64,000 nucleotides of DNA from positions 62,001 through 126,000 of IMG/VR virus record IMGVR_UViG_3300042544_001590. One strand, written 5' to 3'. This document shows, piece by piece, positions 10,695 through 62,337 of the stretch. Every line of letters begins with the position of its first letter. Position 1 is the first letter of the stretch. The notes under the pieces were generated by a model. It had not been told where the DNA came from and searched no databases. It saw nothing but the letters and a program-made list of their open reading frames with translations. The translations under genes and the position numbers were made by a program.

Positions 10695-10766
10695 CGCCGA
10701 ATATATCAGGGGTAGATAAGCTGGCTCATAACCAGAAGGTCGGGGATTCGAATTCCTCTTCGGCAA
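10695..10766 (+). tRNA. tRNA-Met(CAT), initiator-like
   Basis: Cloverleaf with loop CTCATAA and C1:A72 mismatch; no encoded CCA. Confidence 0.85.
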
Positions 10767-10771
10767 CTTTA

Positions 10772-11616: not shown

Positions 11617-12075
11617 ATGAATCAAGAATTAATAACACACGACTCGGAGACACTGAAACATGTCAACGAGGTAAGAAACAACATATGGACTCTGATCAAA
11701 GAGTTGGATCATAGGGCGCAAGTTCATGATGCTTCCAAATTTGAAGAACCGGAGAGAAGTATCTTTGCCAGCAACACTTCCAAATTGGCGAAGACCCAAT
11801 ATGGGACGGATGAATATTCCAAGCTGTTGGAGGAAGTGAAACCAGCAATTGAACATCATTACTCAAAAAACACTCACCATCCCGAACATTGGCCGAACGG
11901 CATTGAGGACATGGATTTACTTGATCTTGTTGAAATGTTAGCAGATTGGGCGGCTGCAACAAAAAGAAATAAGAATGGTAACATCCATAAGTCAATCGAA
12001 CATAATCAGGAGAGATTTAAAATAACACCACAATTATCAAAAATTTTCACAAACACTGTAAATAGATATTTTTAA
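11617..12075 (+). CDS. HD-superfamily-like protein (DUF5662-like)
   Basis: VHDASKF...HHYSKNTHHPEHW...EMLADW pattern. Confidence 0.7.
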   Translation: MNQELITHDSETLKHVNEVRNNIWTLIKELDHRAQVHDASKFEEPERSIFASNTSKLAKTQYGTDEYSKLLEEVKPAIEHHYSKNTHHPEHWPNGIEDMDLLDLVEMLADWAAATKRNKNGNIHKSIEHNQERFKITPQLSKIFTNTVNRYF

Positions 12076-12761: not shown

Positions 12762-12788
12762 ACCCCATCTGAAAAGATGGGGTTTTTT
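12762..12788 (+). terminator. intrinsic terminator
   Basis: ACCCCATCT-GAAA-AGATGGGGT followed by a T-run. Confidence 0.88.
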
Positions 12789-12880: not shown

Positions 12881-12968
12881 GGGTTTGTAGGTAAGTGGTT
12901 GAAACCAACGGACTTTTAATCCGTCTCCGAAAGGAACATCTCAGGTTCGAATCCTGATGAACCCACCA
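12881..12968 (+). tRNA. tRNA-Lys(TTT) with long variable arm
   Basis: Loop CTTTTAA, stem ACGGA/TCCGT, extra arm TCC-GAAA-GGA, T-loop TTCGAAT, CCA. Confidence 0.88.
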
Positions 12969-12969
12969 T

Positions 12970-13042
12970 ACACATGAACGCACCACGGCTGGGCGGGTGG
13001 ATTGTTACTCCATTGAACTTCGTTCGATCCGAAGCATGTGTG
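12970..13042 (+). tRNA. tRNA-Asn(GTT), atypical
   Basis: Acceptor ACACATG/CATGTGT, loop TTGTTAC, G73; A at position 8; no CCA. Confidence 0.75.
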
Positions 13043-13046
13043 CATT

Positions 13047-13121
13047 GATCCCATGGTGAAGTGGTTATCACCCCATACTTTCTATATGGTGTCCCCGATT
13101 CGAATTCGGGTGGGATCACCA
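13047..13121 (+). tRNA. tRNA-Glu(TTC)
   Basis: Acceptor GATCCCA/TGGGATC, loop CTTTCTA (U37), CCA. Confidence 0.88.
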
Positions 13122-13123
13122 AT

Positions 13124-13207
13124 TCTACAGTTCCTTAGTGGTCGAAAGGACTTGCCTTGTAAGCAAGATGCGTAAGCACATCGCCAGTTCGAATCTGGCC
13201 TGTAGAT
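13124..13207 (+). tRNA. tRNA-Thr(TGT) with long variable arm
   Basis: Acceptor TCTACAG/CTGTAGA, loop CTTGTAA, extra arm TGC-GTAA-GCA; no CCA. Confidence 0.85.
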
Positions 13208-13218
13208 CATTTTTTAAT

Positions 13219-13305
13219 GTGTTGTCTCTAATGATGGTGAATTAGGACGGTCTGTAAAATCGTTGCCTTCGGGCTTAGGGGATTCGAATTCCTCACAACA
13301 CACCA
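13219..13305 (+). tRNA. tRNA-Tyr(GTA)
   Basis: Loop CTGTAAA, long variable arm GCC-TTCG-GGC, CCA. Confidence 0.88.
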
Positions 13306-13392: not shown

Positions 13393-13472
13393 AGCTGCGT
13401 AGTGTAATGGTTCAGCACTGACGGTTTTGATCCGTCCAGAGTATCAGGGTTCAATTCCCACCGCAGCCACCA
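13393..13472 (+). tRNA. tRNA-Gln(TTG), irregular T-arm
   Basis: Loop TTTTGAT, stem GACGG/CCGTC, CCA; T-stem pairs fully only with an ATCA bulge. Confidence 0.75.
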
Positions 13473-13473
13473 T

Positions 13474-14574
13474 TTAACTTACTCTAGATTTTGCATCATC
13501 AATTTCAGAACCCATTTTAGGTAGTGTAAAGTGTTCTTTACCTATTTCATAACCACCATACGGATCAATTCCCTGTTTTTTAATATTATTCAAAAATTCT
13601 TTATATTCGGGATTTGTATTGGTGGCATTGGTATATGTAGGCATTACCGCAACTCTACCATCGACCATATTAAATTGTATTTGACCTCCCATAAATATAG
13701 TCTTTGCTGCTGCCAATTGAACCCAATCATCCCACAATCTTTGTGAATACGCAGATTTTGTCACCACTCCAATAGCCTTGACAAAATCTATATAATCTTT
13801 TATAATTTGTTCACCCTTTGGTGATAGATTGTTGGTTTTAACCCCCTTTTCCGTTTTGAATGTTGGGGATTCTATCTGTTTTCCGCTGGTATCGGTAATT
13901 GATATGGGAAATCCATATATATCAGCATTGATATTATCAATACATCCCAATTTACCTGATAATAATTGAACTGAAAATGCAGCTTTAACTGTGGATGCAC
14001 CACTAAAATTTTTGATTAAAAATTTATATAATTCAAATTCATTATCGATAAGTCCTTTATTATAAATATTATCATATAAAAAATTTCTATTTTTCCAAAG
14101 ACTTTTTATATACCCCGATGCACCTTTGTAAAACCAATCCTTAACAGATTGTTTGATTCCGTTCAACCCTATAATATAGTCCACTGGTATATCTTTACCG
14201 TCAGTCTCCTTCACATATGCCACATAAACGGGAAACAAATTTCTAAATTTAGGCCAGCTAGTTCCAACAGTTCCAACCACCAAACTCAATACAAAAAACA
14301 TATTTTCTGCACTTTCACTCGCAAATTTATTAATAGCTGGGTTGTAATCGCAAAAAGATGATTTAGCATTCATCAAATCAGATTGATTTATTATGATAGT
14401 ATTTTCCTCCCCTTTATCGGTTCCCCGCTTATTAGGAATTATTACATCAATACCACCAATATTTGTTATAGTGTGGTTGGGATTTTTTTCAGCGGCAATT
14501 TTGGGGTCAAACGCCTCAATTAAAATTTTATATTTTGTATTTCGCATTTGGAAATATTCATAGAAACTGATCAT
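13474..14574 (-). CDS. putative HhH-type DNA glycosylase-like protein, possible internal head protein
   Basis: GASTVKAAFSVQLLSGKLGCIDNIN resembles a helix-hairpin-helix followed by a catalytic Asp; late promoter; MISFYEYFQ N-terminus. Confidence 0.5.
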   Translation of the reverse strand: MISFYEYFQMRNTKYKILIEAFDPKIAAEKNPNHTITNIGGIDVIIPNKRGTDKGEENTIIINQSDLMNAKSSFCDYNPAINKFASESAENMFFVLSLVVGTVGTSWPKFRNLFPVYVAYVKETDGKDIPVDYIIGLNGIKQSVKDWFYKGASGYIKSLWKNRNFLYDNIYNKGLIDNEFELYKFLIKNFSGASTVKAAFSVQLLSGKLGCIDNINADIYGFPISITDTSGKQIESPTFKTEKGVKTNNLSPKGEQIIKDYIDFVKAIGVVTKSAYSQRLWDDWVQLAAAKTIFMGGQIQFNMVDGRVAVMPTYTNATNTNPEYKEFLNNIKKQGIDPYGGYEIGKEHFTLPKMGSEIDDAKSRVS

Positions 14575-14606: not shown

Positions 14607-16133
14607 ATGATCAGATTTCATAAATTATATCGCCAACTCATGCGGGAATACGTGGAGGATTTCGATGAAAAGTGGGAAAAGGCTGTTTCTGAATCGGAAG
14701 AACTTCAGGTTGCTTTGGATTTGATGAAGAATATCAAGGCGAAATTACAAGGAGAAATCTATATCGTTGGGGGGGTTCCCCGCGATCTTCTCATGGGCAA
14801 TACCATTGATGATGTGGATTTGGCTACCAACATTCCCGTGGAGGAATTGGAGAAACATTTTGAATTGAGAAACATTTCCAAGAACGATTCCCAACCCGTC
14901 TATGCCATTCTCTGGAAAGGTTATGTTTATGATCTGGCAAAATTCCGCACCGATTCTGGTGATATCGGGAGACAATCCAACGTATCAACTGAAACCGATT
15001 CATTTGAAAAGGATTCTGAGCGAAGAGATTTAACGATAAATTCTTTTGGTCTGGATGAAGAGGGTAAGATCGTGGATTATCAGGGTGGTCTGGAAGATTT
15101 GAAGAACAAGATCGTTCGTGCCGTGGGAGATGCCAAACAAAGATTTCTGGAAGACGCTACGAGAATCCTCCGTGTCTTTCGATTTGCTGCCAAGATGGAT
15201 TTTGAAATTGAGGATAATACCAAGAGGGCAGCAATTGAATTGAAACATCTCCTCCAAGACCCCAAGGCAATTTCCCAAGAAAGCATTTCCAAGGAATTTT
15301 TCAAGGCAGCAAAAACGGGACAAACGCTTGCAAATTTCCTGAAGAAATTACAGGACACGAAAATCCTCCATGACATCCTTCCCGAATTTACCACGATGGA
15401 AGGATTTGATCATGATCCCCAACACCACCCCGAAGGGGATTCCCAAGTTCTGGGTCACATCTACGAATGTCTAAAGGCATCCCCATACAAAGACCCTGTG
15501 ATCAATCTAGCTGTGCTTTTCCATGACTTCGGCAAAGCCACAACCAGAGGAAAGAAAGACAATGGTTTTAGCAATTATCATGGACACGAATCGGCGGGAG
15601 TTCCCATTGTAGAGGAAATCTTCAAACGCTTGCGCTTTGCTGAATTATCCCCCCAAGATAAAAAGAACATATTGGCGGCAGTTGATAAACACATGCTTGT
15701 CCATAATCTGGATAAGTTAAACATCAAGACTCTCACCAAGCTGATTCAGAACTCATCATGGGAAACCATCAAAGCGGTGGGCTATTGCGATGAAGCGTCC
15801 CGTGGTTCCGGTCTTTTCAACAAACAGGAATTTTGGGAGAAGATCAAAAGGGCGGAAGAAAAGGTTTCCAATATCGGGGGATCGGAAGATGAAACCAGAA
15901 AACGCCTGAAACAATATTTCAGTGGGGATAAATTGATGCAATGGTTTCCAATTCTCGTCAAGGATAAATCCAAATTCAAGGATATCACAGCAGCCTTACA
16001 GGAATATGTTTTAGAGGAATTGAATGCTGGGCGTGAGCCGAATGAAGAGGAAATGAAAACAATCGCTTCGGGCATTTTAAAGGGGAACCAATTCAATGAA
16101 TGGTTTTCCCACTATTCAAAGTTCGTGCTGTAA
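14607..16133 (+). CDS. cca: CCA-adding tRNA nucleotidyltransferase with HD domain
   Basis: VGGVPRDLLMG, DVDLAT, RRDLTINS, EDATRILRVFRF, LFHDFGK, HESAG. Confidence 0.93.
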   Translation: MIRFHKLYRQLMREYVEDFDEKWEKAVSESEELQVALDLMKNIKAKLQGEIYIVGGVPRDLLMGNTIDDVDLATNIPVEELEKHFELRNISKNDSQPVYAILWKGYVYDLAKFRTDSGDIGRQSNVSTETDSFEKDSERRDLTINSFGLDEEGKIVDYQGGLEDLKNKIVRAVGDAKQRFLEDATRILRVFRFAAKMDFEIEDNTKRAAIELKHLLQDPKAISQESISKEFFKAAKTGQTLANFLKKLQDTKILHDILPEFTTMEGFDHDPQHHPEGDSQVLGHIYECLKASPYKDPVINLAVLFHDFGKATTRGKKDNGFSNYHGHESAGVPIVEEIFKRLRFAELSPQDKKNILAAVDKHMLVHNLDKLNIKTLTKLIQNSSWETIKAVGYCDEASRGSGLFNKQEFWEKIKRAEEKVSNIGGSEDETRKRLKQYFSGDKLMQWFPILVKDKSKFKDITAALQEYVLEELNAGREPNEEEMKTIASGILKGNQFNEWFSHYSKFVL

Positions 16134-26886: not shown

Positions 26887-28572
26887 ATGAAATCAACGAA
26901 AAAATTAACATTGGAGGTCTTTATCCAAAGATCAAACGAAGCGCATAATAATTTTTATGACTATTCTAAATCAGAATATAAAAACGCAAATACTAAATTA
27001 ACCATAACTTGCCCAACCCATGGAGAATTCATACAGAAACCAGCGGATCACATGCGAGGATGTGGGTGTGTGTTATGTGGGAATTATAAAAACACGAGAT
27101 TGAAACCTTTTGAGCAATTCCTAGAAGAAGCTAATAAAAAACATGATAATTTTTATGATTATAGTAAAAGCATTTATATAAATTCCACCACTAAGATTAA
27201 CATAATTTGTCCTATTCATGGGGATTTCACACAAATTCCAAATTCTCATATTTCGGGTCAGGGATGTCCTAAATGTGGTCATTATAAAAATACAAATAAA
27301 AAGAACACCGAAGACTTTATTAAACGCTCTACGATTATACACAACAATAAATACGATTATTCAAAAGTTGAATATGATGGTAATAAGAAAAAGGTTATTA
27401 TAATATGCCCAACCCATGGAGAATTCATCCAAATTCCAAATGCACATTTACGGGGGGCTGGATGTTGGAACTGTAGTGTTGATTATAGAATGAACGAAAA
27501 AAGATCAAACAGTAAAGATTTTATAGAAAAAGCCAACATAGCCCATCAAAACAAATATGATTATTCATTAGTTAATTATTATAATAATTATCAAAAAATT
27601 CCCATAAAATGTCCTAAGCATGGGATATTCAATCAAAATCCGGGAAACCATTTACAAGGTGCTGGGTGTCCAAAATGCTCTTCAATTGAAAGTAAGTCTG
27701 AAACAAAAATAAAATCTATATTAGAGGAAACGGGAATCGATTTTATACAACAAGATAGAACTTTAATCAACCCATTTGAGATAGATTTCGTAATTCCTGA
27801 TTATAAAATTGGAATTGAGTTTAACGGTATTTACTATCATTCGGAAGATAATGGAGGTAAAAATAAAAAATACCATCTGAATAAAACAGATCGGTGTGAA
27901 AAAGAGGGATATCAATTAATCCATATTTTCGAAAATGAATACATACAAAAATATAATTTGTTGAGATTTAAAATAAAATCACTATTAAATAAAAATAAAT
28001 ATCGCATATTTGCTAGGAAGTGTATTGTCCGAGAAATAACACCTCAAGAGAAATGCAGATTTAATAAAAAATATCACATACAAGGGGATTCCCAATCATG
28101 TGTTAATTTGGGGTTGTTTTATAAAGAGAGGTTGGTTCAAGTTATGACTTTTTCTAAAAGAAGAAAAGCATTAGGTTCTAAACACGTTAAAGGTGAATAT
28201 GAACTTTCCAGAATGTCTTCTATGAAAGGATTTACCATTGTGGGTGGCGCATCCAAGCTATTAAAACATTTTGAGAAACATTATAATCCTAAGAAGTTAA
28301 TCTCTTATGCTGATAGAAGGTGGAGTAAAGGAGATGTGTATTATAAAATGGGGTTTTCATTTATTAGAAACACCCCACCAAATTATTGGTATTTTTATAA
28401 AAAACGCGCTGATAAGCCATTACACCACCGATACAAATTCGCTAAACATACTCTTGAAAAACAATTGGAAATATTTGACCCAAATTTAACAGAGTGGGAA
28501 AACATGAAAAACAATCATTATGATCGTATCTGGGACTCTGGTAATATGCTATTTGAAAAGGTGTATGATTAA
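26887..28572 (+). CDS. Hef-like free-standing homing endonuclease
   Basis: Four YDYSK...ICP.HG.F.Q.P..H..G.GC repeats, EIDFVIP...GIEFNG.YYH nuclease motif, C-terminal GGASKL..ISYADRRWS; antisense to the structural genes. Confidence 0.82.
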   Translation: MKSTKKLTLEVFIQRSNEAHNNFYDYSKSEYKNANTKLTITCPTHGEFIQKPADHMRGCGCVLCGNYKNTRLKPFEQFLEEANKKHDNFYDYSKSIYINSTTKINIICPIHGDFTQIPNSHISGQGCPKCGHYKNTNKKNTEDFIKRSTIIHNNKYDYSKVEYDGNKKKVIIICPTHGEFIQIPNAHLRGAGCWNCSVDYRMNEKRSNSKDFIEKANIAHQNKYDYSLVNYYNNYQKIPIKCPKHGIFNQNPGNHLQGAGCPKCSSIESKSETKIKSILEETGIDFIQQDRTLINPFEIDFVIPDYKIGIEFNGIYYHSEDNGGKNKKYHLNKTDRCEKEGYQLIHIFENEYIQKYNLLRFKIKSLLNKNKYRIFARKCIVREITPQEKCRFNKKYHIQGDSQSCVNLGLFYKERLVQVMTFSKRRKALGSKHVKGEYELSRMSSMKGFTIVGGASKLLKHFEKHYNPKKLISYADRRWSKGDVYYKMGFSFIRNTPPNYWYFYKKRADKPLHHRYKFAKHTLEKQLEIFDPNLTEWENMKNNHYDRIWDSGNMLFEKVYD

Positions 28573-41756: not shown

Positions 41757-43208
41757 ATGGCTAGAATTTACAAAACAGATGAAGTGATCAAACTTTTCAA
41801 GGATAAACATGGGGATCGGTATGATTATTCTAAATTTGTTTATCCCGGTAAAAAGAATGATAAAGGGATTGTGATCTGTAGAGAGCATGGTGAATTTCTG
41901 ACTTCCAAACAATATCATTTAAAAGGGTGTGGTTGCCCCGAATGTGTTGGTGTTCCAAGAGGAGGTTTTAAACGGAGAACCCAAGAACAATTCATGGAAG
42001 AATTGAAAGAAAAATATCTAAAATTTTATGATTATGATTTTTCAAAATTCATATATAAGAACAATACTACCAAAGGAACTATCATATGCCCCAAACACGG
42101 GGAATTTCAAATCACACCCAAACACCTTTTGATGAGACAGTATGGTTGTTCGGAGTGTTCAGGGAAGAAAAGATTAACAATTGAAAAGATCAGGGAATTG
42201 ACATCCTATCAAATTCCCGATCAGGAATACACCAATAATAAAACACATATTAAAGCTGTTTGTGAATTGCACGGGGAATGGTTGGTGCGACCAGATAACC
42301 TACTTCATGCTAAAACGAGGTGTCCTGTATGTGCGGAGAATCTATCCAAGATTGAAGAAGAACTTAGGGAATTTGTTAAAACAGAGTTGGACGTTACCAT
42401 TATCACAAATGATAAACAAATTCTAGATAAAAAAGAATTGGATATCCTATCCCACAAACATAACATTGCAATTGAAATGAATGGTTTGTTTTGTCATTCG
42501 GAGGAAGGAGGTAAGGACAAACATTACCACCTACACAAGACGAATAAGTGCTTAGAGTCTGGTATTCGTTTATTTCATATATTTGAGGATGAATGGCGGA
42601 ATAAACAGGAGATTTGGAAATCCATTATTAGATATAATTTTAAAATGGTTCCCAATAAAATCCATGCTAGAAAATGTGAAATCAGATTGGTTGATAATTT
42701 CACCACCAAACAATTCTTAACAGATAATCATCTACAAGGATATTCTAATTGTTCTGTTTCTGTGGGACTTTATCATAATGATCAATTGGTATCCATATTA
42801 ACTTTTGGTAAGAGTAGATTCGATAAAAACGTGGAATGGGAGCTTATCCGTTTCGCCAATGTATTGAATACATCAGTAGTCGGTGGATTCCAGAAATTGT
42901 TCAAACACTTCATCAAGACTTACAATCCAAATTCCATTGTATCATATGCAGATAAACGATACTCAATTGGTAATGTATATCGTAGTGTTGGGATGGAAGA
43001 GATTGAAAACGATGCTGTTAATTATTATTATTTCAATAAGCGAGAAGGTGTTAGATATTCTCGCCATCAGTTCCAGAAACATAAGCTGAAAGATAAGTTA
43101 CCAATCTTTGATGAGTCCTTGAGTGAGGGTGATAATATGAAATTAAATGATTTTTACAGAATCTATGATTGTGGTAATTATAAATTTGTGTGGAGGAAAT
43201 CCTTGTAA
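41757..43208 (+). CDS. Hef-like free-standing homing endonuclease
   Basis: YDYSK/IC..HGEF/GC.EC repeats, ELDI...IAIEMNG.F.H, VGGFQKL...IVSYADKRYS; paralog of 26887..28572. Confidence 0.82.
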   Translation: MARIYKTDEVIKLFKDKHGDRYDYSKFVYPGKKNDKGIVICREHGEFLTSKQYHLKGCGCPECVGVPRGGFKRRTQEQFMEELKEKYLKFYDYDFSKFIYKNNTTKGTIICPKHGEFQITPKHLLMRQYGCSECSGKKRLTIEKIRELTSYQIPDQEYTNNKTHIKAVCELHGEWLVRPDNLLHAKTRCPVCAENLSKIEEELREFVKTELDVTIITNDKQILDKKELDILSHKHNIAIEMNGLFCHSEEGGKDKHYHLHKTNKCLESGIRLFHIFEDEWRNKQEIWKSIIRYNFKMVPNKIHARKCEIRLVDNFTTKQFLTDNHLQGYSNCSVSVGLYHNDQLVSILTFGKSRFDKNVEWELIRFANVLNTSVVGGFQKLFKHFIKTYNPNSIVSYADKRYSIGNVYRSVGMEEIENDAVNYYYFNKREGVRYSRHQFQKHKLKDKLPIFDESLSEGDNMKLNDFYRIYDCGNYKFVWRKSL

Positions 43209-61920: not shown

Positions 61921-62337
61921 TTACCGTCTAACCAACGGGTAAATATCATATTCTTCATCCCACATGTAGCAAGCTAATTTCCGTTTTGGTTTGGATATCA
62001 GCTTATATTTGATGATGCTTACAACATCATCAATGGAAATCTTTTCATTTTTCTTCTTACGCTTCAACATGAAGAACTTGAGAACCTTTTCATTCAGGGA
62101 TTTCTCATAATCTTTCACAACTTGATGTTTGACTTGTTTATATTTCTCCTGAATGTTTGTCACATCTTCGGATGGAAATCCTCGTCCTCCTGACATATCC
62201 CAAACAGCGTTTAGGTAATGTGTTGCCAGATGTCCAGCAATTTTTGTGGCTTCTTCTTTCTCTTCCATAGTCATCTCTTTGAGATGTTTTGCTGCGTTAT
62301 TCAATTCGTTTATATTAACCATAATTTTATCCTTCAA
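61921..62337 (-). CDS. hypothetical protein
   Basis: ORF track. Confidence 0.68.
   Translation of the reverse strand: MKDKIMVNINELNNAAKHLKEMTMEEKEEATKIAGHLATHYLNAVWDMSGGRGFPSEDVTNIQEKYKQVKHQVVKDYEKSLNEKVLKFFMLKRKKKNEKISIDDVVSIIKYKLISKPKRKLACYMWDEEYDIYPLVRR

Follow-up and report, generated by a model that had tools for sequence, protein, structure and literature searches.

The phage genome examined here carries genes for a tRNA-Lys(UUU) and a tRNA-Thr(UGU) whose variable regions are extended into a short stem-loop, the class II design which in bacteria is normally restricted to tRNAs for Leu, Ser, Tyr and Sec. Both belong to large and apparently undescribed families which are common in big phages, and from their sequences they look like genuine working tRNAs, possibly reshaped to escape bacterial tRNA-cutting defences. 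The first-pass annotation of this region had described two such tRNAs with extra arms, and that observation is confirmed. Its interpretation, that they are either nuclease-resistant replacements for host tRNAs or chimeras which could be charged with Leu or Ser, is only partly supported: the former is plausible though the evidence is circumstantial, the latter is not supported. It also took the two genes to be isolated oddities, whereas they are members of very large families.

The lysine and threonine tRNAs and their array

The window, that is, the whole 64,000-nucleotide stretch analyzed (positions 62,001 to 126,000 of IMG/VR record IMGVR_UViG_3300042544_001590), is part of a complete 207,489-bp phage genome with direct terminal repeats. 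The phage is a distant T4-like myovirus; its major head protein is about 33% identical to those of cultured T4-like phages, and it possesses a portal protein, a helicase and a ribonucleotide reductase. ARAGORN identified 13 tRNAs in the genome, in two clusters and nearly all reading A-ending codons, of which eight lie in the window. Besides the CCA-adding enzyme encoded just downstream of the array, the genome specifies Rnl1- and Rnl2-type RNA ligases, and the phage is thus well equipped for tRNA maturation and repair.

Table 1. Features of the tRNA array and its surroundings (window coordinates)
Position	Strand	Feature	Description	Evidence
12762-12783		Terminator		Promoter and terminator scan
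12881-12968	+	tRNA-Lys(UUU)	88 nt with encoded CCA; acceptor 12881-12887/12958-12964; A73 at 12965; anticodon 12915-12917	ARAGORN; Rfam 59.7 bits; cloverleaf MFE fold
12925-12940	+	Lys variable region	16 nt: C; 3-bp stem UCC/GGA (12926-12928/12933-12935); GAAA loop; 5-nt tail ACAUC ending in C48	Sequence; hairpin in the fold; same geometry across 109 family members
12970-13044	+	Non-canonical tRNA-Asn(GUU)-like cloverleaf	Between Lys and Glu; anticodon 13004-13006; G73; long D-stem with a 4-nt loop and no G18G19; 3-nt variable loop	Cloverleaf MFE fold; sits where relatives have tRNA-Asn; design shared with L022, with compensatory changes; not called by ARAGORN or Rfam
13047-13121	+	tRNA-Glu(UUC)	Ordinary class I, same array	ARAGORN; Rfam
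13124-13207	+	tRNA-Thr(UGU)	84 nt to discriminator U73, no encoded CCA; acceptor 13124-13130/13200-13206 with an unusual U1-A72; anticodon 13158-13160	ARAGORN (13124-13208); Rfam 56.1 bits; fold z = -2.4; orthologue in L022/L066, L073, L077 and L081
13168-13182	+	Thr variable region	15 nt: A; 3-bp stem UGC/GCA (13169-13171/13176-13178); GUAA loop; tail CAUC	Sequence; fold; family geometry
13219-13305	+	tRNA-Tyr(GUA)	Genuine class II; arm of 1 nt + 3 bp + 3-nt tail; geometric reference for the Lys and Thr arms	ARAGORN; fold; arm comparison
13393-13472	+	tRNA-Gln(UUG)	Enlarged variable loop of about 10 nt; weak T-stem	ARAGORN; Rfam 37 bits; shared with L022
13474-14574		366-aa ORF	No Pfam or PHROG match; only a weak DUF7178 lead	Profile searches
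14607-16133	+	CCA-adding enzyme	tRNA nucleotidyltransferase with an HD domain; needed to finish the Thr tRNA and able to repair 3' ends	phrog_2244, E = 4e-62; PF01743 and PF01966

Both RNAs score well above the gathering threshold of 29 bits of the Rfam tRNA model [RF00005], which places insertions of 12 (Lys) and 11 nt (Thr) exactly in the variable region, and both are canonical 7/5 cloverleaves with respect to their acceptor and T-stems. The two arms share one design, a single unpaired base, a 3-bp stem, a GNRA tetraloop and a tail ending in CAUC, the last C of which can pair with G15, and RNAfold forms both hairpins inside an otherwise normal cloverleaf. The D-stem of the Lys tRNA is 3 bp plus an A13/A22 mismatch, in agreement with the 3-bp stem claimed in the first-pass annotation, while that of the Thr tRNA is 4 bp. 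No convincing promoter was found directly upstream of the Lys gene.

Thirteen loci from related phages were recovered through their CCA-adding enzymes (76–96% identity). All carry a normal tRNA-Lys of 73–77 nt at the same array slot, and the long-arm Lys is so far unique to this phage within its clade. Nearly all carry a normal tRNA-Thr, but one locus, designated L022, shares the Thr tRNA of 85 nt. The long-arm Thr recurs in a conserved Glu-Thr-Tyr-Pro-Gln block in five contigs, in which the acceptor stems are completely different but still paired, the T-stems show compensatory changes and the arm stem is constant. Other relatives have long arms on other tRNAs, including a Pro tRNA of 98 nt and a Met tRNA of 89 nt. 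That the arms are recent insertions into the local class I genes was rejected, since the window's Lys resembles distant long-arm Lys tRNAs, such as that of locus L029, and not the short Lys of its relatives, and since the D-arms of the long-arm tRNAs are class-II-like (see below).

Families of long-arm tRNAs in phages and bacteria

Megablast of the array against cultured phages gave no match; blastn with the window's Thr likewise gave none, and with its Lys only three partial hits. Family members were therefore sought by pattern. Scans of viral contigs with restricted patterns requiring a long gap between the anticodon loop and the T-arm gave 39 and 21 contigs, and all hits were called as tRNA-Lys(UUU) of 82–93 nt or tRNA-Thr(UGU) of 84–89 nt. 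Scans of the same design for five isoacceptors, using generic consensus patterns that fix the anticodon loop and one T-arm sequence, gave after ARAGORN filtering at least 109 distinct long-arm Lys(UUU), at least 108 Thr(UGU) and at least 130 Asn(GUU) tRNAs.

The three families share one arm geometry: 1 nt, a stem of 3–4 bp, mostly a GNRA loop (52/86 Lys and 60/101 Asn), and a tail of 3–4 nt. In the first family sets 88% (Lys) and 94% (Thr) of variable regions form a hairpin of at least 3 bp, against 30% and 28% of shuffled regions. The stems covary, each level showing 4–5 canonical pair types, while a slid register gives only about 40% canonical pairs. The D-arms are closest to those of other long-arm tRNAs, not to those of short tRNAs of the same isoacceptor, even though short class I tRNAs outnumber long-arm ones roughly 3:1 in the pool compared. 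At the level of the families the core is therefore class-II-like, and not that of a class I tRNA with an insertion.

Cultured phages also hold such tRNAs, all annotated as ordinary tRNAs. Xanthomonas phage X1 has a long Asn and a long Lys(CUU), each beside a normal copy, and Proteus phage Stubb has a long Asn. A total of 604 records match that long Asn, of which 518 cover at least 80% of the query; they include T5-like coliphages and Salmonella phages, T4-like Klebsiella phages and jumbo Pseudomonas phages. Long-arm Lys(UUU) occurs in Rhodobacter phage RcXuper, Ruegeria phages and XacN1. The XacN1 paper, a review of non-canonical tRNAs and the papers on defence evasion by phage tRNAs do not mention them, and we found no description of long-arm Lys, Thr or Asn tRNAs in a literature search which did not extend to subscription-only papers, including the T5 tRNA sequencing work of the 1980s.

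A scan of 185,579 species genomes gave 18 hits, all in MAGs and most of them in phage-like tRNA arrays. Six Actinomycetota, however, carry a lone, near-identical tRNA-Lys(UUU) of 85–87 nt next to ordinary cellular genes. In one of these, genome G001, which has 46 tRNAs covering all amino acids, the 85-nt long-arm tRNA is the only Lys(UUU) tRNA. None of the six has a normal-length copy, whereas 25 of 39 genomes in the order of G001 do. MAGs may be incomplete, but given the 14/39 order-mates without a match, the chance that all six lack a normal copy by incompleteness alone is about 0.002. These cells must decode AAA with the long form. It is not a lineage-wide trait, as only 1 of the 39 genomes in the order of G001 has it, and it is sporadic and probably acquired horizontally. 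Co-evolution with a class I LysRS was also rejected: PF01921 was absent above its cut-off in the five of the six genomes that were searched (all but G043), and these cells use class II LysRS.

Amino acid identity

Lysine identity rests on the UUU anticodon, which alone confers it, and on A73; asparagine identity on its anticodon and G73; threonine identity on acceptor-stem pairs and anticodon nucleotides; serine identity on arm size, G73 and G1-C72/G2-C71; and E. coli leucine identity on A73, the A15-U48 Levitt pair and D-loop elements including A20a, and not on the arm (PMC9976931). The window's Lys has U34-U35-U36 and A73. In E. coli the threonine determinants are G35, U36 and C2-G71, all of which the window's Thr possesses. 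It does, however, have U1-A72 where 105 of 108 family members have G1-C72, and may be charged less well. In every long-arm family the discriminator follows the amino acid of the anticodon: Lys A73 in 88/109, Thr U73 in 89/108, Asn G73 in 109/123 (89%) and Cys U73 in 23/23.

Genuine Ser tRNAs in the same loci have arms of 4–7 bp with a 0–1 nt tail and genuine Leu tRNAs have a 2-nt tail, while the window's arms are 3 bp with tails of 4–5 nt. Neither tRNA has G73, position 2:71 is G-C in Lys but C-G in Thr, and both have G15-C48 instead of the A15-U48 that E. coli LeuRS needs; the U73 of Thr also argues against Leu. Although SerRS and LeuRS ignore the anticodon, the suggested mischarging with Leu or Ser is therefore not supported. 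The closest geometry is that of Tyr, with a 3-bp stem and 3-nt tail. Bacterial TyrRS relies mainly on A73, U35 and G1-C72, with a contribution from G34 (PMC9976931); the window's Lys has the first three and a Tyr-like arm, but U34 and U36, while the Thr has none of the determinants. Any residual risk of mischarging is thus Tyr. AAA makes up 60% of the Lys codons of the phage, about 5% of all its codons, and mischarging would damage its own proteins.

Possible role of the arm

Our best explanation is that both genes specify working phage tRNAs which carry lysine to AAA and threonine to ACA codons on a class-II-like body. In this view LysRS and ThrRS read the anticodon, discriminator and acceptor stem, so that the arm, with a 3-4 nt tail setting a Tyr-like orientation and a matching enlarged D-arm, would not change the amino acid loaded. 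The arm would most likely persist because it sits beside the 3' strand of the anticodon stem and changes the D-loop and core, making these tRNAs poor substrates for host nucleases which recognize the anticodon stem, D-loop and body of ordinary tRNA-Lys, Thr and Asn (PARIS AriB-like, and possibly PrrC-like). Phage translation could then continue when host tRNAs are cut, backed up by the CCA-adding enzyme and RNA ligases. The genes, the families, the covariation, the identity elements and the cellular replacement are established by the present analysis; expression and correct charging are inferred from sequence, and nuclease evasion is a hypothesis. We regard cognate function as likely and evasion as a tentative reason for the arm, somewhat less likely than not, which leaves the combined statement about as probable as its negation.

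The link to defence is circumstantial. PARIS AriB cuts exactly Lys(UUU), Thr(UGU) and Asn(GUU), at 40|41; it requires U39 and A41, reads the D-loop and needs further distal contacts in the tRNA body, and the three corresponding T5 tRNAs together neutralize PARIS (PMC12409363). Where the E. coli targets read U39-C40|A41, the window's Lys reads UAAUC|C, with C41, and its Thr UAAGC|A, with G39. The third target, Asn, is represented in this array by the conserved but aberrant cloverleaf listed in Table 1, which has a compact D-arm, while the neighbouring Glu, Tyr, Pro, Gly and Met tRNAs are ordinary. Among the five isoacceptors scanned in the same way genuine long-arm tRNAs outnumber chance hits for Asn (125:9), Lys (109:30) and Thr (74:42) but not for Ile (32:71) or Arg (17:91). 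Normal and long copies sit side by side in 34/115 Lys and 47/141 Asn loci, which suggests that they are not redundant. There is also a precedent for arm-based escape, since T5 tRNA-Tyr resists Retron-Eco7 through its distinctive variable loop (PMC13096335).

Several results speak against evasion. The experimentally resistant Lys, Thr and Asn tRNAs of T5 are class I molecules of normal length (78, 78 and 75 nt), so that resistance does not need an arm, and a direct link through T5 was rejected. Long-arm Lys and Thr rarely co-occur, a long Thr being present in 1/12 Lys-selected loci and a long Lys in 2/13 Thr-selected loci, and the co-occurrence of the PARIS trio within arrays is weak and only suggestive. 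Among unselected tRNAs, counted in loci that already contain one long-arm tRNA, long arms are also frequent in Ile(UAU), Cys, Met and Trp, which are not AriB targets. With the relaxed pattern 11 of the 109 long-arm Lys still carry the cleavable UCA at 39–41.

Alternatively, the scaffold may be a neutral accident, a possibility which we consider unlikely but the best of the rivals. Phage tRNA arrays turn over by duplication, recombination and anticodon or discriminator switching, and a Tyr- or Ser-like scaffold might have been re-tooled into Lys and Thr tRNAs whose arm, ignored by LysRS and ThrRS, simply persists without benefit. In agreement, the tRNAs at one array slot differ greatly between phages whose CCA-adding enzymes are 89–96% identical, the D- and T-arms of the actinobacterial long-arm Lys nearly match tRNA-Ser(UGA) of the same genome, a long-arm Lys query cross-hits genuine tRNA-Tyr in Acinetobacter phages, and long arms occur in many isoacceptors. 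On the other hand, three families keep the same specific geometry and GNRA bias over hundreds of divergent sequences with compensatory changes, long and normal copies are kept side by side, and the distribution is very uneven (Phe 0/147 and Arg 1/91, against around 20% for Thr and Asn in the same loci).

Less likely still, the arm might serve as a handle for the phage's own CCA-adding or repair enzymes or for processing out of the polycistronic array, or might stabilize fast-made, under-modified tRNAs. GNRA tetraloops are typical contact modules and dominate the arms, the CCA-adding enzyme lies next to the array, and the Thr tRNA lacks an encoded CCA. However, the same arm type occurs in actinobacterial chromosomes with no phage enzymes nearby and in phages of very different lineages, and no partner protein was identified. 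It is very unlikely that these RNAs are decoys which soak up tRNA-targeting effectors or have another regulatory role, even though non-productive binding by viral tRNAs has been raised by the AriB authors and the window's Thr has an atypical first base pair, since full cloverleaves, intact anticodon loops, correct discriminators and the cellular replacement all point to translation. Least likely is recoding of AAA or ACA through mischarging, even with Tyr, given the discriminators, the AAA usage of the phage and the six genomes in which a long-arm tRNA is the sole AAA decoder, the last of which argues that LysRS wins.

The closest known systems each differ from the tRNAs described here. The T5-type escape tRNAs against PARIS AriB and Retron-Eco7 (PMC12409363, PMC11464382, PMC11555353, PMC10264068) are phage-borne copies of the same isoacceptors with substitutions at positions 39 and 41, a distinctive variable loop in the case of Tyr, and tRNA-repair enzymes in the same genome, but their Lys, Thr and Asn members carry only point changes on class I bodies, whereas here the whole body plan is changed by the addition of an arm and remodelling of the D-arm. 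The allo-tRNAs and related Sec-like tRNAs (Mukai et al., PMC5389517) are long-arm tRNAs with anticodons outside Leu, Ser and Tyr, found in metagenomes and some phages; they have 8/4 or 9/3 acceptor/T helices and G73 or U73 and are read as serine acceptors, while the window's tRNAs are 7/5 with short Tyr-like arms and cognate Lys or Thr determinants. The nematode nev-tRNAs (Hamashima et al.; cited in PMC5389517) have class I anticodons (Gly, Ile) on long-arm bodies. They are eukaryotic and are reported to be charged with leucine in vitro, whereas here all identity evidence points to cognate charging. The experimentally characterized type I tRNA-Leu of Streptomyces coelicolor (PMC6614811) is the mirror image, a class II isoacceptor on a class I body which coexists with the normal type and is charged by the single cognate synthetase; short Leu tRNAs also occur in this phage and in G001. 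Bacterial tRNA-Tyr shares with the long-arm Lys its arm geometry, A73, U35, G1-C72 and D-arm type, but the Lys has UUU in place of GUA, a tail often of 4 nt and a preference for a GNRA loop, and serves as the lysine tRNA in cells that have no other.

It is possible, though doubtful on present evidence, that placing a long variable arm on normally short-armed isoacceptors, above all Asn, Lys and Thr, is a widespread and selected way for phages to camouflage tRNA body plans against tRNA-targeting immunity, and that bacteria have occasionally adopted the same trick in replacing their own tRNA-Lys(UUU). The textbook restriction of bacterial class II tRNAs to Leu, Ser, Tyr and Sec would then be broken systematically and for a functional reason. 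Escape from tRNA-cutting defences (PrrC, PARIS, retron and Septu PtuAB, bacterial Schlafens) has so far been traced only to point changes in or near the anticodon loop or the variable loop. A whole-body redesign, kept in hundreds of phage lineages for the same isoacceptors that PARIS attacks, would be a new escape principle, and would also give a reason for the many duplicate tRNAs in large phages. Independently of defence, and provided that the inferred cognate charging holds, class II LysRS, ThrRS, AsnRS and CysRS tolerate long-arm substrates in nature, and a bacterium can live with a type II tRNA-Lys as its only AAA decoder. This bears on tRNA identity rules, on the annotation of genes now deposited as plain tRNA-Lys and tRNA-Asn, among them those of cultured E. 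coli, Salmonella, Klebsiella, Xanthomonas and Rhodobacter phages, and on the design of orthogonal or tagged tRNAs.

Other tRNAs of the phage and its relatives

Between the tRNA-Lys and tRNA-Glu genes lies a cloverleaf with a GUU (Asn) anticodon and G73 which is called neither by ARAGORN nor by Rfam. It possesses a long D-stem with a 4-nt loop and no G18G19, a 6-bp anticodon stem and a 3-nt variable loop, and sits where relatives have a normal tRNA-Asn. L022, a locus from a related phage, has the same design with a different, still paired acceptor stem. The tRNA-Gln(UUG) has a variable loop of about 10 nt and only a 3-bp T-stem (37 bits); the same form occurs in L022 (79 nt), while other relatives have a normal Gln of 74–76 nt. 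A tRNA-Met(CAU), followed directly by tRNA-Gly(UCC), shows a C1/A72 mismatch at the top of the acceptor stem, the hallmark of a bacterial initiator tRNA.

Outside the window the phage genome carries two tRNA-Leu(UAA) of 75 and 77 nt, that is, class-I-like Leu without the long arm. Short Leu tRNAs also occur in Proteus phage Stubb, Xanthomonas phage X1, many viral loci and the actinobacterial genome G001, and type I tRNA-Leu has been published for Streptomyces (PMC6614811). Close relatives of the phage have a tRNA-Met(CAU) of 89 nt and a tRNA-Pro(UGG) of 98 nt with long variable arms, while their Lys and Thr are normal.

Locations of the additional features. L numbers are viral or bacterial tRNA loci; G000:C1 is the phage genome
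Feature	Location	Strand
tRNA-Met(CAU)	window 10695–10767	+
DUF5662 protein	window 11617–12075	+
Asn(GUU)-like cloverleaf	window 12970–13044	+
Cloverleaf of the same design in L022	L022 691–763	
tRNA-Gln(UUG)	window 13393–13472	+
366-aa ORF	window 13474–14574	-
CCA-adding enzyme with an HD domain	window 14607–16133	+
Two ORFs of the HNH homing-endonuclease family	window 26887–28572 and 41757–43208	+
Rnl1-type and Rnl2-type RNA ligases	G000:C1 17017–17577 and 33675–34241	
Two tRNA-Leu(UAA)	G000:C1 57695–57769 and 59071–59147	
Long-arm tRNA-Met(CAU) of relatives	L011/L012 778–866	
Long-arm tRNA-Pro(UGG) of relatives	L011/L012/L013/L020, e.g. L011 3755–3852	
28-tRNA phage array	L083 31–5250	
Long-arm tRNA-Asn(GUU), cultured phages	e.g. 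MH830339 36368–36452, CP000917, MZ501108, NC_047881	
Long-arm tRNA-Lys(UUU), Actinomycetota	L089–L091, L093, L094, L099 (genomes G001, G002, G041–G044)	

Protein-coding genes around the array and elsewhere

The CCA-adding enzyme is encoded next to the tRNA array, whereas the genes for the two RNA ligases lie elsewhere in the genome. No clear polynucleotide kinase was found, AAA_33 being below its cut-off. The ORF between the array and the CCA enzyme has no Pfam or PHROG match, and there is only a weak language-model lead to viral DUF7178 proteins. Between the two parts of the array a DUF5662 protein of unknown function is encoded (PF18907, E = 6e-38). Two further large ORFs match the same HNH homing-endonuclease family (phrog_559, E = 1e-165 and 1e-123); one lies near the ribonucleotide reductase gene, whose product matches only the C-terminal two-thirds of the profile.

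Long-arm tRNAs in other phages and in Actinomycetota

A long-arm tRNA-Asn(GUU) of 83–86 nt is widespread in cultured T5-like, T4-like and jumbo phages of Enterobacteria and Pseudomonas (604 records in the phage collection searched), where it is annotated simply as tRNA-Asn. T5 itself (NC_005859) has a 78-nt Asn. One phage array of 28 tRNAs (L083) contains paired normal and long-arm copies of Thr(UGU), Glu(UUC), Ile(GAU) and Pro(UGG), plus long-arm Gln and Asn, and looks like a doubled tRNA set in two body plans.

Six Actinomycetota MAGs from different orders carry a near-identical chromosomal long-arm tRNA-Lys(UUU) of 85–87 nt as their only Lys(UUU) tRNA. It lies next to cellular genes (PPK2, Dyp peroxidase with encapsulin), and its D- and T-arms nearly match the tRNA-Ser(UGA) of the same genome. 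Its occurrence is sporadic (1 of 39 genomes in the order of G001), which suggests horizontal acquisition and replacement.
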